Part shown: positions 49,914-61,162 of the stretch, in pieces
Numbering within the stretch: position 1 is the first letter of the stretch
Layout of the letters: the number at the start of each line of letters is the position of its first letter
NCBI GenBank assembly: GCA_904063045.1
Contig: CAJFCJ010000014.1
Span: 620,001-684,000 of the forward strand
DNA length: 64,000 nucleotides
Direction of reading: 5' to 3'
Source of the DNA: Dimorphilus gyrociliatus
Taxonomy: Eukaryota; Animalia; Annelida
Made by a program: the position numbers and the translations under genes
Notes under the pieces: generated by a model
Told to the model about the DNA's origin: nothing
Databases searched by the model: none
What the model saw: the letters and a program-made list of their open reading frames with translations, nothing else

Positions 49914-50218
49914 GTGTTTATGCTAATTAAAGGTACTATTGTGTTCGATACCGAAGTAGGTTTGGGCCTACTTAACCCAGACGGATCATGAGATATAGGA
50001 ACGTACACAGTCACCAATTAAAAATTGAGTAGTACTGATACAACTCACTTTTGAGTATAAGAATAGAAAAAAACTCATCCTAAGTAGCAGGCAGACAGAA
50101 GAGTTTGATATTCTAATCTTTGAAGTCGCATTAGTTGTAAAATTCATCAATTTCCTTTAAAATAACTGACTCTAGTTCGAATTTTTGATAATTTTACGTT
50201 GGGAAGATTGAAGGAAAA

Positions 50219-51584
50219 ATGAGAATGGTTCAACTTATGCTAGTCATTCTGTGTACTGTTGTCTACTGCCAAGCTAGCCCTTTAAAACTTCTGTCGTTTA
50301 ATACTCGCTTAACAGCCGATGAACTGTACACAAGAAGTCGTTTTCTTAAGACTGTACAGACATTAAAGAGGCTTGACGCTGATGTATTATGTTTACAGGA
50401 AGTCTGGAATGATGAACATCTCTTTTCCTTGATTGAAGATCTTGAATGGAAATTTCCCTTTAGTTACTCTTTCGTGCACAATGTAGGTGGTCTATTGAAT
50501 GAAAAATTGGACTTGCCAAATTCGAAATGCTCTGAGAAGGATGGAGATAGATTGTTGAAATGCATAAAAAACAACTGCTTAAACAGCAAAGATTCTGAAG
50601 AGTTTCATTCTTGCTATGTTAACGAGTGTAATCCTTTTGACTTGAACTTAAACGAGGCTTGTAGAGAATGTACAACTCTTCAAATTGAAGCTTGTATTAA
50701 AATTATGCCGCAAAATGTGAATAAAGATAGGATTATGGAATGCCTTAAACAAATTAAAAGACCAAGAGGAATTTGCTCTTCAAGAACAATTGATACTAAA
50801 GCTAATCATGGATTGCTTATGCTTAGCAATGTACCTTTAAATAGTCAAAGAAGAGGTATATTCACTAAAGATTCGCTAATTGCAAGAGGTTTTTTGGAGG
50901 CAAAAAACAATTTTGGTGAAAAATTTGTATGTACTCAAATGACAACTGGAAGATCATCTGTATATAGTGAAAGTAAGTATTGAAATCTAAAGTGAATTAT
51001 ACAGCATAACTCAAAAAATATCGTGCTAAACTATTAATATATTAACCTTTTCAATAACAGCAAAGACGCATTTCAACAATTGGTACGATTTAAAGGAAAG
51101 CGAAGTAGAACAACTGGTAAACATGTATTCTCAATCAAAACAAACTTATATTTTGGGTAATTTCAATGTCGGTCCGGCCATGCCAAGTAATGGAATTAAA
51201 CCTTACTACTCCGATCTTTATAAGGTATAATAATTTTATATTGTTCCACAATAATTGATATAAATTGACAAATAGATAATGGAAGATCGCGGCCTGGAAA
51301 ACATTATTGTGAGAGAAGCTGGCAAATGTACACTTTGTGCTAACAACGAACTGGCAAAGGATGATATATCGAATTCATACATTGTGGATGGTTGCATTTT
51401 GGTCAACGTTGATCGCTGTAGATTATCAAATGAAGTTATTTTCAAAGAAAATATGCTACTAAATCCCAGAACTAGAAAACACTATCCACTTTCTGATCAC
51501 TACGCTACGCTATCAACATTTTGCGATAATTTAGAGCTATTCTTAACTAGCTCTGATGATGGCTCCGGGAGCGGTGGCAACTGA
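50219..51584 (+). CDS. Secreted EEP (endonuclease/exonuclease/phosphatase)-fold protein with a Cys-rich insert, 3 exons
   Basis: Signal peptide, LLSFNT, DADVLCLQEVW, ILGNFN and PLSDH motifs. Introns lie near 50972-51060 and 51226-51275. Confidence 0.8.
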
Positions 51585-55135: not shown

Positions 55136-56810
55136 ATGAAAAAAATGACAATTACCGGCGAGACATTCCAGCAAAGTACGATCTATTTTTCTCTCTTATT
55201 TGGCAGTCTTTCTCCATTTTTCTCCCTTCTTCATTCCGATTGTTTCTCTCTCTCTCTCTCTTATTCTCAATTCTTAGTTCTCCTATTCTTCAATCAACCT
55301 ATGTTTCGAACTATCAAGCTCATCCTTTTTCATCCTGATTTTTTTCAAAAATAGGATACCGGCTACTATCAAAGAAAGGTGAAGGTACATTTTCGGAAGT
55401 GTTCAAATGCCAATGTATAGAAGACGGCTCTTACTGGGCATGTAAAAAATTAAAGCAAAGATACGAAAGCCTTGAACAAGTTAATCAATTAAGAGAAATC
55501 CAAGCGATGAGAAGATTAAGTGAACATTCTAATATACTTAAATTACAGGATGTTATATTGTATGTGATCTTGGCTATTTATAAATGTAGATATGCATTTT
55601 AAATTCATTAATTCCCTATTTTTTTCTTCCCCCATCCTCCGTCAATCCAATCATTTATTGGATAACTTCAAACAACGTCTGATAAAATCTTCTCTCTCTA
55701 TTCGTTAACAAAAAAAAACGCCTCTACAGTGAAAAACAAACTGGATCTTTAATACTTATATGTGAATTAATGGATATGAATATTTTTGAATTAATTAGGG
55801 GTAAGTGATATTTTTTTTCTTATAATTATTATTTATTGAACATGATTATATGATTCTTAATATTTGAGTGTTTCGAATATTCTATTACTTTGTAAGCCAT
55901 TCTAAATTCGAACAAAAAAACGAATTGTTTATTCAAAGCATATGGGAAAGGAAGGAGTGCTAAAGTAAAACAGAGGGGTTGAGAGAGACACAGAGAGAGA
56001 GAGAGAGGGGGGGGGGAAAGAAAGAGATTGAGAGAGAAGGGTAGGAAATGAGGAGGGGGAGGGGGTGATATTACAGGTGTAAGGAAACGGAAATTATAGC
56101 ATTTTGTTTAAAAAACAGCAGCAAAATAAAGCTTGTAAAGAGGAATAGACAGACAGGCAGAGTGAGAGAGAGAGAAAATTTGTTGGCTAATATCCAATAG
56201 CGGAAATCGGATTAGAAGAGATTAGCCGATATGCGTAGAAATTTTGAGGAATTATTCATAATAAAAGATTAACATTAAGCGGTTAAATTTCTTCATAAAA
56301 CAATAAAATTGTGTTATCAGGTCGTCGTCACTATTTAGATGAGAAGAAAGTAAGGAATCATATGTATCAGCTATTAAGAGCAATCGACTATATGCATCGG
56401 TTTGTACTATTAGACAATAGTGCTCTATAAAAAAAAGAACATCAGAGAGAATCCTCTTAGTATCCCTAATTAAGGGGAAAAGTCTCTAAAAGATGCTATT
56501 TACTGAGATAAACCCTCTTTAACGAATTTTTGCTCCTTGTCATCTTTTACTTATAATAACGGGGAAAATATTTCTATTTTAGGCCTATAATATCTATAGT
56601 TCATATTTATATTATTTTCCATTTTTTTGTCTATCCATCTATCTATCTATTCTCTATATTTCTTTTCCTTTGTTATTTCCATTTTTCAGGACGAAAACAT
56701 AATTTAGCAGAAAGTAGAACTAAACGCCTTGTATTTCAATTACTCAAAGCTGTAGATTACATGCATAGGTAAAGGAAAGAAGAAAGATTTAACATTAATT
56801 ACTGTATACA

Positions 56811-56851
<41 letters not shown>

Positions 56852-59217
56852 GGGAATAATAATATATTATTATTATTTATTACTAATATATATAATATAT
56901 ATATATATATATATGTCTTCTATACCACACATTCTTTCCTTCCACACACCCAAACAAATAAACAAGTCACACTACCTCTTTCTTTTCATTCTTTTACCTC
57001 TTTTCTTGAATGAATTAGCATTTTTTTTTTTTACTTTTGTTTATTTCTCTCGCTCTTTCTCTTTCTTTCTTTCTTTCTCTTCATTTTTCTTATCTAAACT
57101 GCTTTTTTTTCCGCTTTTATGCTTTAAACATTAAATAATTACCTTATAATTAAGGCTTTTTTTAACTAAAATACGCGTTTCTTTCTGTATAGAAATGGCA
57201 TTTTTCATCGAGACGTTAAACCGGAGAATGTGCTAATAAAGGTAAGAAAAAAAAAGAGATATTTGTATTATTTATTATATTTATCTTGGAAAACAATCAA
57301 TGAAGTTTAAGTGCGTTAAACAATTAATATATCAATGAATAACTACAATACATTTTAAGAAAACCAATAATTATTAGATTTATTCTATACTCTGCTGACA
57401 TCTACCGACAAAAGTTAAACTTTTACTGTATAATAGTGTAATAATAGTACTATTCGTAGTATATTATTTATCATGCGACCTTTTATTAAATGGATCTAAT
57501 TAGATTAATTGTTAATAGGATTATATATTTGTTATTATTGTTGTTATTGTTTCCTTTGAAATATTTTAGGACGACGTTTTAAAGTTGGCCGATTTCGGAT
57601 CATGCAGAAGTATACATTCAAGAGCTCCTTATACCGAATATATATCTACCAGGTGGTATAGGGCTCCTGAATGTCTTTTAACTGATGGATACTATAGTTT
57701 TAAAATGGATATTTGGAGTGTAGGATGTGTACTTTTCGAAGTAATGTGGTAAAAAGCTTTTATCTTTAATTTTTGCAAATAGTTAAAATAACTTAACTTA
57801 ATTAATATTCATGAATTAATTAACCTAATTATTTTTAACAAAATATAAATACATATTTGTATTTAATCTATTTTTAGTTTGTATCCACTTTTTCCTGGTT
57901 CTAACGAAGTGGATCAAATATCTAAAATTCACGATATAATAGGAACACCGGATCCAAGCATTTTGGATAAATTAAAAAAGTCAGTAAACAAATTCTATTT
58001 ATTTTAAAGTCTAATTTTTAATGGAAAAGTAAAAAAAATAAAAAAAAAAAAGACATTCAATAAAAAATTTTTCAGTAAAACTCGTGGAATAAATTTTAAC
58101 TTTCCACCAAAAAAAGGATCAGGAATAGAAAAATTAATGCCCCACGCTCCTAGAGATTGCATAGATCTTATCTATAAAATGTGCACTTACGATCCGGATG
58201 AACGATTAACAGCACGTCAGGCTCTGAAACATAGCTATTTCAAGGAATTAAGGTTTGTTATTCTATAGGATAGACAGGGAGGGAAATTAGTCGCTTAGTA
58301 TTAACCTATATTTTAAAACGGACTTTGCGTGTTTCAAAGTAGGAAACTAATTGGGTATTTCATCGATTTAGCAGTAATTCCAATACGGCAAATACTTTTA
58401 ATTCTTTAGCTATAGAATTTTTCAAGTAGAGTTTATTTGTTATGATTCATCTTAAGCCGATAAGCGATAAAAAGTCAACATTTGTTTGCGCTATCTTCCA
58501 CGTGCATTGTTCATATCTTGTCTCCTACTCTTCTTCTTTTGATAACTAACTTGTAAAGAGTATAAGTATTATACTCTTTACAAGTTATTTATCAATGAAA
58601 TAATGTACACGTTGTATCATTAACCGGTAAAAGGCCGTTGGCTATTGGTTATGTACAGGCCACATGTTATATATTACATAGCAAATCATATATTAATACT
58701 AATATGATTAAAGTTTAAAAAATATATACAGTATATACGCTGTATACAGTATAAAGAGCACAATAAAGAAAAGGAAGAAGCCTGTTCTATGTGTTTGCTA
58801 TGCGAGCGTAAAGGAATCTACTAATACTTTCAAATCTATATTAATGATTCAAAGAATTGCTTCTTTCTTTCAAGTTGTTCAAGTCAAAAAGCTTATAGAG
58901 AGATTTTATAATTCTTGCTAATCTATTAACAAAAAAAAGGATATAATATTCTATACACCTGAATTTTGCTTATATACAGTATATATATATATGTATTGAT
59001 ACCAGTAAGATTACTTTTAATTCTGATTTCCTTCGAAAAACATACAGATTATTAACTATAAAAAAAATTAAAATATTGAACGATAATACAAAATCCTTTC
59101 ATTTTGTGCTGAATAATATAAAATTGGAATTTATTTTGGATAATTTCACGGATATTGTATGGTTTTTTTCTGTCTGCCTGTCTATCTCTAGCTCTCTCGA
59201 TCTATCTCTCCCTATCC

Positions 59218-59254
<37 letters not shown>

Positions 59255-61162
59255 AAACCTTATCTGTCTCTACTCTACATTTTCTCTCTCTATTAACTGT
59301 TTAAATACTATGAGTTCGAATGCTAAACTACCGCCTGTTGAACTAGGAAAAAGTCTAATTTTGTAAGTATTTTCATATAAATAGTATATTCTTGTTTGTC
59401 TAAGGAAAAAAGAGAAAAGAATGTTGAAAAAATTATTCACTACAGTTTATTAAAAGGAGTTTTATGCGTTTTAAATGTGTAATTAACCGAAATCTTTCTT
59501 TTGTAATCAAGAAATATTACATATCAATGTTTATCTTATAAAAATAGAAGTATAGAAAATCAGAAAAGTGGAGCATTTTACGTATTTTGATTGATATATA
59601 TATATTTCTATTCTATTCTCTAATAAGAATTTTTCTCTAATACAATGGTAAAGTATATATACAGTATCCACATACCCGCATATATAATGCACATAGGCTT
59701 AGAAAACTGAAGGAAATTCGTTGTATAGTCAACACGAGGTTATTGTAAGCGTCGTCGACGTCATTTACTTTTTTTTTTACTTGAAAGAAGGGATTAGTTT
59801 TATATTTTGTGCTTAAAAAAGAAAGTCTTCTCTTTTTTGTCCTTTAACAATGAAATAGCAAAATGTATGAACTTTTTTTTTATGAACGTACCTAATACAT
59901 ACAATATTCAATCTAATAAATAATAGCTCAACTTTGATACTTTAATAGTTAAAAAAAAAAATCCAGTTTTAGATAAGCGCGATACTGACGTAATATAAAA
60001 TGAAACAACTATTGTCCCGACGTATTTAAAAAAAATCAATTTATTTGTAGAAAAGTGTTTAAAAAGTGAACGAAAACACCCACTCCACTCAGCTATTTGT
60101 TATATTTAATCTTCTCTAAGTATAATTCAAGTTCAAAGCTATTAAAACCTAAATAATTAGGTTATAGTTATATTGTATCTACATATACTTTTATATTGAT
60201 TATGGGATTTAGTTTTAAAAATGTCTTTCTTTCAATGTTCAACAGGGAACAGGAAAGGAGAGCTAAAGCTGAGAGACGAATGGAAGAAGAACATGCCAAT
60301 TCTGTGAAATTGTTAGAAACAAAAGTTATCTCTAATAATGCGTCTACGACGCCTAGGCCTACATCAGCTACTCGTCGTAATAATAATTTTTTCCGATCGG
60401 AAGGAGTAAAGCGTAAAAAAGATAAACATAAACGCCGAATGGTTTTATCTAGTAATAATGGAATGGCTAATGAATTGCCAAAAATGAATGTGATGCATTC
60501 TACTTATAAACCAACTTTTCATCTAAGTTCATATACAACAGCCGGTTCTTATCCAAAGATAAAGGCAAAAGAAATATCCTCGACAGACCCTTTGCCCAGA
60601 ATTAATACACTTTTTAAGCAAAAGAAAGTTAAACAAGTAAGAATGAATTTGCAAATATAATAGAATATTTTTTTTTGTTCTTTCATAATATATCTTATCT
60701 TTAATCTGTGTTTAATAAAAACAGAGCAATCAAACGTCCAAGAATATTATAAACGGCCATTATCAGTTACCGTCTATAGAACGGTAGGAAATGAGGTTAT
60801 AGTGATGTATATGAATATCATCAATTTTTTGTCAAAAGACTTAATATTTTAATAATTTTGTATAACCTGTTAAGACCTAAATTTCTACTGTTAGGTGAAG
60901 GAATTAAATGTATTTCTTTATTTTTGTATTTTTCACGTAAGATGTCTAATCTTGAAGCAAAACTGCATGAAACGATAATTTTAATCTTTCATATTTATGT
61001 ATAAAATATACAATATATTATATAAATATATATTTTAGTATATATATATATATAAACAATAAGCAATAAACTTTTGGTAATTTTAATAAAATGTAATCAA
61101 ATTTTAAGGTAACATTTTTTTTGTGTTTTTAATTGATAACAAGAGGACATTTATCCGACTAG
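55136..61162 (+). CDS. MOK: MAPK/MAK/MRK-overlapping kinase (MOK), multi-exon
   Basis: Motifs [61 protein letters not shown] and [13 protein letters not shown]; tail ...LPSIERGHLSD*. Confidence 0.93.
56321..56399 (+). other. MOK: MOK alternative exon A (79 nt)
   Basis: cag|[27 protein letters not shown]|gt, phase 1 to phase 2. Confidence 0.88.
56690..56768 (+). other. MOK: MOK alternative exon B (79 nt)
   Basis: cag|[27 protein letters not shown]|gt, same length and phase as exon A. Confidence 0.88.
58547..58587. repeat. Perfect 19-bp-stem hairpin in a MOK intron
   Basis: taacttgtaaagagtataa-gta-ttatactctttacaagtta. Confidence 0.9.
59185..59292. repeat. (CT)n-rich tract; related GA/CT tracts near 46697-46725, 55240-55260 and 55980-56060
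   Basis: Directly visible dinucleotide runs. Confidence 0.9.

Follow-up and report, generated by a model that had tools for sequence, protein, structure and literature searches.

Evidence for mutually exclusive use of two tandem kinase-domain exons in a MOK-like gene of the annelid Dimorphilus gyrociliatus

Introduction

Among the MAPK-group kinases, p38alpha occurs as CSBP1 and CSBP2, which carry one or the other of two alternative copies of a kinase-domain exon, and the JNK genes of vertebrates (JNK1, JNK2 and JNK3) choose between exons 6a and 6b, which encode a later region of the C-lobe, unlike the alphaD-alphaE segment of MOK that concerns us here. The 6a and 6b isoforms have different partner preferences. 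Mechanistically, exclusivity in JNK results from a U12/U2 hybrid intron, and in JNK2 the long pyrimidine tract of the downstream exon sets the default (PMC1874599). MOK, LF4, MAK and ICK set cilium length in organisms from algae to mammals (PMC4171540, PMC6682161). How kinases of the MOK type recognize their partners is poorly known.

Here, we follow up a preliminary description of DNA from the annelid Dimorphilus gyrociliatus ("the worm" below), which had placed two mutually exclusive exons inside the kinase domain of a MOK gene, and we compare the locus with assembled RNA, with MOK loci of other animals and with the systems outlined above.

Results

Gene architecture and identity

The window, that is, the whole stretch of DNA analysed, is 64,000 nucleotides long, and all positions are counted from its first letter. 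The exon map was built from open frames, tblastn with orthologs, and joints in RNA contigs from four runs: X5, assigned to the worm's own species because 11 of its 13 contigs agree with the window to 99% or better, and RNA-derived, since its contigs are spliced; X2, from a relative with about 5% exon divergence; X4, from another organism; and X1, a marine metatranscriptome. The features are as follows.

55136..55175, + strand: coding exon 1 of the MOK-like gene (ATG at 55136 or 55145; donor GT at 55176; the letters that precede 55355 in contigs of all four RNA runs match)
55355..55559, + strand: kinase exon with the glycine loop GEGTFSEV, the ACKK lysine and helix alphaC (LREIQ), from RNA contigs
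55730..55800, + strand: constitutive exon 5' of the pair, ending in ELIR plus one carried-over G, from sequence and RNA contigs
56321..56399, + strand: exon A, 79 nt, the canonical-like copy, encoding the alphaD-alphaE linker and helix alphaE, from sequence and joints in X5, X2 and X1
56400..56689, + strand: A-B intron, 290 nt, with U2-type ends and a donor (gtttgtac) that is not U12-like; its own removal was not seen (no joint from 56399 to 56690)
56690..56768, + strand: exon B, 79 nt, the diverged copy, from sequence and joints in X5, X2 and X4
57193..57241, + strand: constitutive exon 3' of the pair, with the catalytic loop, from sequence and RNA contigs
57570..57748, + strand: exon with DFG, the TEY activation loop and APE, from RNA contigs (Pfam Pkinase, E 2e-17)
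57878..57979, + strand: kinase C-lobe exon, from RNA contig joints and tblastn
58076..58252, + strand: last kinase-domain exon, donor GT at 58253, from RNA contigs and tblastn
60246..60790, + strand: 3' coding exons of the tail, given as one block (contig letters after 58253 match 60247-60276)

The exon at 55355-55559 corresponds to positions 1-66 of Pfam Pkinase (E 5e-11) and is joined to the exon at 55730 by a GT..AG joint in RNA contigs (55559 to 55730), and the donor of the latter exon (GGG/gtaagt) is a strong site. In the tail, tblastn with Bugula MOK matches 60475-60621 and 60719-60784.

On sequence grounds, the gene is a MOK-like kinase of the RCK family within the CMGC group. Pkinase is the only Pfam domain detected in the exons, and the activation loop encoded at 57570-57748 is of the TEY type, as in MOK, whereas MAK and ICK have TDY. 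In an exhaustive representative search with the exon at 57570-57746, the leading full-length matches included the MOKs of Bugula and Ciona, and the best identity was 88%, with no protein of the worm itself coming up; the constitutive kinase exons share 193-204 of 257 residues (75-79%) with named MOKs of spiralians, echinoderms and chordates, and a C-terminal GHYQLPSIE motif is common to the MOKs of the worm, Bugula and Owenia. The GxGxxS/G loop, ACKK lysine, HRD, DFG and APE are all encoded by constitutive exons, so that no catalytic residue lies in the segment that is swapped and both isoforms are predicted to be active kinases. Structurally, searching the PDB by sequence yielded no structure of MOK, MAK or ICK, the nearest solved relatives being CDKL5, CDKL3 and CDK7; the swapped region can be aligned to CDKL and CDK structures with no gaps.

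Two further observations concern the surroundings of these exons. In X5, two different sequences follow the exon end at 58252 (consensus agreement at the loose end 0.63), one of them being the exon at 60246 and the other not found by pattern search within the window; the 2-kb intron 58253-60245 may hold an alternative exon. At the equivalent place, Owenia has a cassette exon of 42 amino acids (locus L003, 23105-23233; protein models P0163 versus P0159). Additionally, a long open frame on the + strand at 50192-50980, 5' of the kinase gene, has a signal-peptide-like start (MRMVQLMLVILCTVVYCQA) and an LCLQEVW motif reminiscent of enzymes of the endonuclease/exonuclease/phosphatase fold.

Two homologous exons of equal length and phase

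Exons A and B are each 79 nt long, preceded by AG and followed by GT, and both enter in phase 1, with the G carried over from 55800, and leave in phase 2, with the A at 57193 completing the codon. The sequence thus agrees with the preliminary description of two homologous 79-nt exons of equal phase, with canonical splice sites, that bridge the ELIR exon to the next one; the layout of the flanking exons given there also stands, except that the downstream junction had been set at 57192, which is the last intron base, and the exon starts at 57193. In BLOSUM62 scoring against A of the 30,342 stop-free 27-mers in the six frames of the window, B reached 84 and the next best 26, so the similarity of the two is not due to chance; the same six-frame scoring found no third copy in the window. 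At the nucleotide level, A and B are identical at 43 of 79 positions (by codon position, 17/26, 17/27 and 9/26 for the first, second and third), and 13 of the 27 encoded residues differ, with identities numbering 5 of 15 in the first 15 residues and 9 of 12 in the last 12. Against orthologs, A reaches up to 21/27 identical residues and B at most 16/27. Exon A corresponds to Pfam Pkinase positions 92-115, and exon B alone has no Pfam Pkinase match at E 0.1.

Because 79 is not a multiple of three, messages with both exons or with neither stop early: after A, B would be read as TKT-stop (within 3 codons), and with both skipped the next exon would be read to a stop within 14 codons. That double inclusion and double skipping each shift the frame agrees with the preliminary description. 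Both early stops lie 5' of at least four exon junctions, for which reason nonsense-mediated decay is expected to act as a fail-safe and would probably remove messages that carry both exons or neither.

RNA evidence for exclusive use

All four joints expected of single-exon inclusion are present among the X5 contigs, with depths (given per assembled contig, so that rare forms are dropped, ratios are unreliable and no tissue or stage is attached) of 141 for the upstream exon to A (55800 to 56321), 50 for the upstream exon to B (55800 to 56690), 162 for A to the next exon (56399 to 57193) and 108 for B to the next exon (56768 to 57193), beside 286 for a constitutive contig. Neither an A-B joint (56399 to 56690) nor a skipping joint (55800 to 57193) was found among the X5 contigs. 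The exclusive splicing first proposed from the letters of the window is hence borne out at the level of contigs, and the junction check that had been suggested for it, from 55800 through A or B to the next exon, finds both exons spliced in rather than just one, for the run as a whole. The spliced contigs also rule out that B is a pseudo-exon.

Elsewhere, run X2 holds both forms, at contig depths of 52 and 18 with the A-junction contigs the deeper, and the differences listed for X2 in the exon at 55355-55559 are all at third codon positions; X4 holds B in a contig of 2764 nt and has no A contig, and X1 has the A form only. The balance of A and B seems to differ between samples. Taken as a whole, the joints make it very probable that one gene gives rise to two kinase isoforms through exclusive use of A or B.

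An unspliced X5 contig spans the whole A-B intron (56370-56718, ungapped, depth 37), and most other introns of the gene have zero depth; this contig may reflect slow splicing of long composite introns or retention.

Splice sites and the enforcement of choice

The two exons are unequally equipped for splicing, A having weak sites (20 of 40 bases before the AG are pyrimidines; donor TCG/gtttgt) and B strong ones (34 of 40 pyrimidines; donor TAG/gtaaag). We infer that the choice between them is probably a regulated competition, comparable to that in JNK2, in which A's weak sites would be set against B's strong ones. Two mechanisms known to make exons exclusive can be ruled out: U12/U2 incompatibility, which operates in JNK, since all donors are GT in a U2-like context, and steric hindrance, for which the A-B intron, at 290 nt, is too long.

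A repeat search for selector or docking pairing in the RNA found low-complexity GA/CT and AT matches only. GA-rich tracts 5' of A (55954-56040 and 56139-56177) are complementary to a CT-rich tract 3' of B (57044-57089), over 31 nt at 77% and over 22 nt at 86%, and pairing between them would loop out both A and B; these low-complexity tracts are probably not a selector element.

The exon pair in other animals

The tandem pair also turned up where the preliminary description had suggested looking, in the MOK loci of other invertebrates. In Biomphalaria glabrata, two copies lie 1.5 kb apart (locus L001, 28122-28202 and 29658-29738), and in Lingula anatina 0.5 kb apart (locus L004, 10506-10586 and 11110-11190); each copy is 79 nt long, is bounded by AG and GT and runs from phase 1 to phase 2, and within both pairs pS is saturated and dN is 0.32-0.43. 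More broadly, isoform pairs that differ just in the 27-residue segment are present in about 15 mollusc genera and in Lingula, mostly as RefSeq isoforms X1/X2 (the Elysia pair consists of GenBank models). Their distribution, and that of single-copy loci, is as follows.

Bivalve isoform pairs: oysters (e.g., Magallana gigas), Mytilus, Argopecten, Dreissena, Mya, Ruditapes/Mercenaria
Gastropod isoform pairs: Pomacea, Littorina, Babylonia, Haliotis, Gigantopelta, Physella, Biomphalaria, Elysia
Brachiopod isoform pair: Lingula
Single-copy loci: Owenia and Lamellibrachia (annelids), Lineus (nemertean), Bugula (bryozoan), Liolophura (chiton), Patiria (sea star)

Likewise, just one segment appears in the isoforms annotated for Tubulanus, sea stars and amphioxus. 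In the single-copy loci of Bugula (L006, 5921-5974) and Patiria (L008, 9031-9087), faint matches to the segment occur in the flanking introns (E 0.02-0.04), and they may be remnants of a second copy that has decayed, or due to chance. The Biomphalaria GenBank model P0192 contains both copies in series, amounting to an insertion of 24 amino acids relative to P0202, and the RefSeq isoforms X1 and X2 of the same species (P0360 and P0361) contain a single copy each; P0192 is likely a mis-annotated exon pair.

Across 16 pairs, the worm's included, the two copies differ at segment positions 5, 9, 10 and 13 in 14-15 pairs, and positions 17, 18, 26 and 27 differ in none. As for novelty, the preliminary description knew of no account of the arrangement in MOK, and no paper on it was found here, with literature searches on mutually exclusive exons in MOK and on the worm's alternative splicing yielding nothing relevant; isoform pairs of this kind are, however, already deposited in RefSeq and GenBank for molluscs and Lingula. 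The worm pair is a new, RNA-supported case, in a third phylum, of a pair that public gene models of molluscs and brachiopods already contain implicitly.

Age and selection

Comparison of A with B gives a pS of 1.02 (saturated), a pN of 0.32 and a dN of 0.42, and the core of the segment, comprising QLL, A and DYMHR in the buried half of alphaE, is kept in both. With synonymous sites saturated and dN only 0.42, and with the buried residues kept, both copies appear to be old and under selection, since an unused copy of such age would have lost its frame, its splice sites and its buried residues; selection on each copy, which the preliminary description had read from the two open yet diverged frames, is thus supported by the substitution pattern. 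Two related organisms also splice B in frame; there it differs at 6 of 74 compared bases plus the first exon base, with at least two protein changes (Gly to Glu at the first residue, and K12R). As this divergence is not below that of the single intron stretch compared, the between-species data add no evidence of constraint.

One origin or several

Evolutionarily, a tree of 39 segments (27 columns) joins the worm's A and B as sisters, weakly (support 87/62), and groups the diverged mollusc copies with the chiton single copy and Lingula copy 2 (86/75); a constrained tree that unites all diverged copies in a single clade is worse by 5.2 log-likelihood units, and the AU test does not reject it (p 0.29). 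Separate origins are favoured by residues that the members of a pair share and that are specific to their lineage (GR... and DYMHR in the worm, KSIE in Lingula, QLCKSV in venerids), and by a patchy distribution, which takes three gains, or one gain and at least five losses. A single old origin is favoured by the order of the copies, since in all three loci read a canonical-like copy with K10-V11 lies upstream and a Ser/Thr-rich copy downstream, and by L-x-E-S, which worm B and Lingula copy 2 both have. On these segments the two histories appear about evenly balanced, and the duplication in the worm may be independent. A bolder version, in which annelids, brachiopods and conchiferan molluscs each duplicated the 79-nt MOK exon on their own and every resulting mutually exclusive pair rewrote the exposed positions 5, 9, 10 and 13, strikes us as rather unlikely; if true, such convergence would argue for a so far unrecognized surface on RCK kinases that serves docking or regulation and can be switched, and that perhaps matches MOK to different kinds of cilia.

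Discussion

What the swap may do

Judging from its gap-free alignment to CDK-like structures and from the kinase fold, the swapped segment spans the alphaD-alphaE linker and the whole of helix alphaE, ending four residues before HRD. In ERK2, the D-motif docking groove, to which partner motifs bind, comprises L113, L119, H123 and Y126 with the beta7-beta8 turn, and segment positions 6, 10 and 13 would correspond by alignment to L119, H123 and Y126, in a linker two residues longer than that of ERK2. At position 6, A and B both have Leu, and positions 10 and 13 are among the four sites of recurrent difference. The swap would accordingly keep the buried half of alphaE (QLL.A.DYMHR) and rewrite an exposed stripe at positions 5, 9, 10 and 13; in MAP kinases the corresponding stripe lines the D-motif docking groove. 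Thus, we posit that the two isoforms may differ in the partners they bind, be these substrates or an activating kinase or phosphatase, a proposal to which we give slightly less than an even chance and which is the favoured one, ahead of a tuning of stability or activity and then of no separate role for B. Speculatively, the A and B isoforms could perhaps serve different ciliated cell types in a worm that moves by ciliary bands.

Three competing explanations stand beside this proposal. The two sets of joints could stem from two paralogous MOK genes or haplotypes rather than from alternative splicing of a single gene, which the shortness of the junction contigs leaves room for, as they are linked to the locus by the 28-30 nt of flanking exon that they carry; against this, A and B lie 290 nt apart in one locus with common flanking exons and intact splice sites, the contigs of both junction sets agree with the window to 99% or better, and for the like arrangement in Biomphalaria and Lingula the annotation gives isoforms of single genes, so that we consider such a second gene or haplotype extremely improbable. 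Granting alternative splicing of one gene, B might be spliced in and yet have no role of its own, as a tolerated minor isoform that stays open because the shared helix must fold. B is indeed more diverged than any ortholog (at most 16/27), misses the Pfam threshold and changes its protein sequence between close relatives, and the A-junction contigs are deeper than the B-junction contigs in X5 and X2. The saturation of synonymous sites at a dN of 0.42 speaks against this, as do B's intact and strong splice sites, the assembly of the B form alone (in the 2764-nt contig) in X4 and the molluscs and Lingula, which retain similar pairs differing at the same four positions, a coincidence otherwise hard to explain, which argues that the second copy has a use. 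We therefore hold a B without function to be improbable.

A use for B need not involve partner docking, however, and the swap could instead tune stability, dependence on Hsp90/Cdc37, or how alphaE packs onto the catalytic loop and, through this, basal activity. MOK is a reported Hsp90/Cdc37 client, several of the differences fall at semi-buried helix positions (14 H/L, 15 M/V, 16 Y/F and 22 I/V), and 11 of the 16 pairs differ at position 19 (L/C/V), all of which would fit such tuning. The recurrent sites 5, 9, 10 and 13, in contrast, are spaced as one face of the linker and helix and in the majority of copies hold polar or charged residues, a pattern more in keeping with a surface than with a core. 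Tuning of this kind seems to us unlikely as the main effect, if clearly less so than a B without function, and the switch in partner recognition remains the reading that we prefer.

Significance and comparison with known systems

A natural, selected swap limited to the alphaD-alphaE surface, and seen repeatedly among lophotrochozoan phyla, suggests that this surface is functionally important, and the A/B pairs are ready-made isoform pairs for tests of binding and localization. For annotation, spiralian MOK genes should carry two isoforms, and at least one deposited model, that of Biomphalaria discussed above, likely joins both copies in error.

The worm locus is most similar to the mollusc and Lingula MOK pairs, in which the orthologous exon, located between YELIR and NGIFHRD, has equal length, phase and tandem layout, one copy is used per isoform, and positions 5, 9, 10 and 13 are again the recurrent sites of difference. 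The worm is the first annelid case here; the two other annelid loci checked, those of Owenia and Lamellibrachia, have one copy. Among better-known kinases, JNK1, JNK2 and JNK3 of vertebrates likewise have tandem homologous mutually exclusive exons (6a/6b) in a CMGC kinase domain, and JNK and the worm MOK gene have in common a downstream exon with a much stronger polypyrimidine tract (PMC1874599 for JNK; the present sequence for the worm). Unlike JNK, worm MOK has sites that all look U2-type. The p38alpha pair, finally, is a parallel in another gene and at a different exon.
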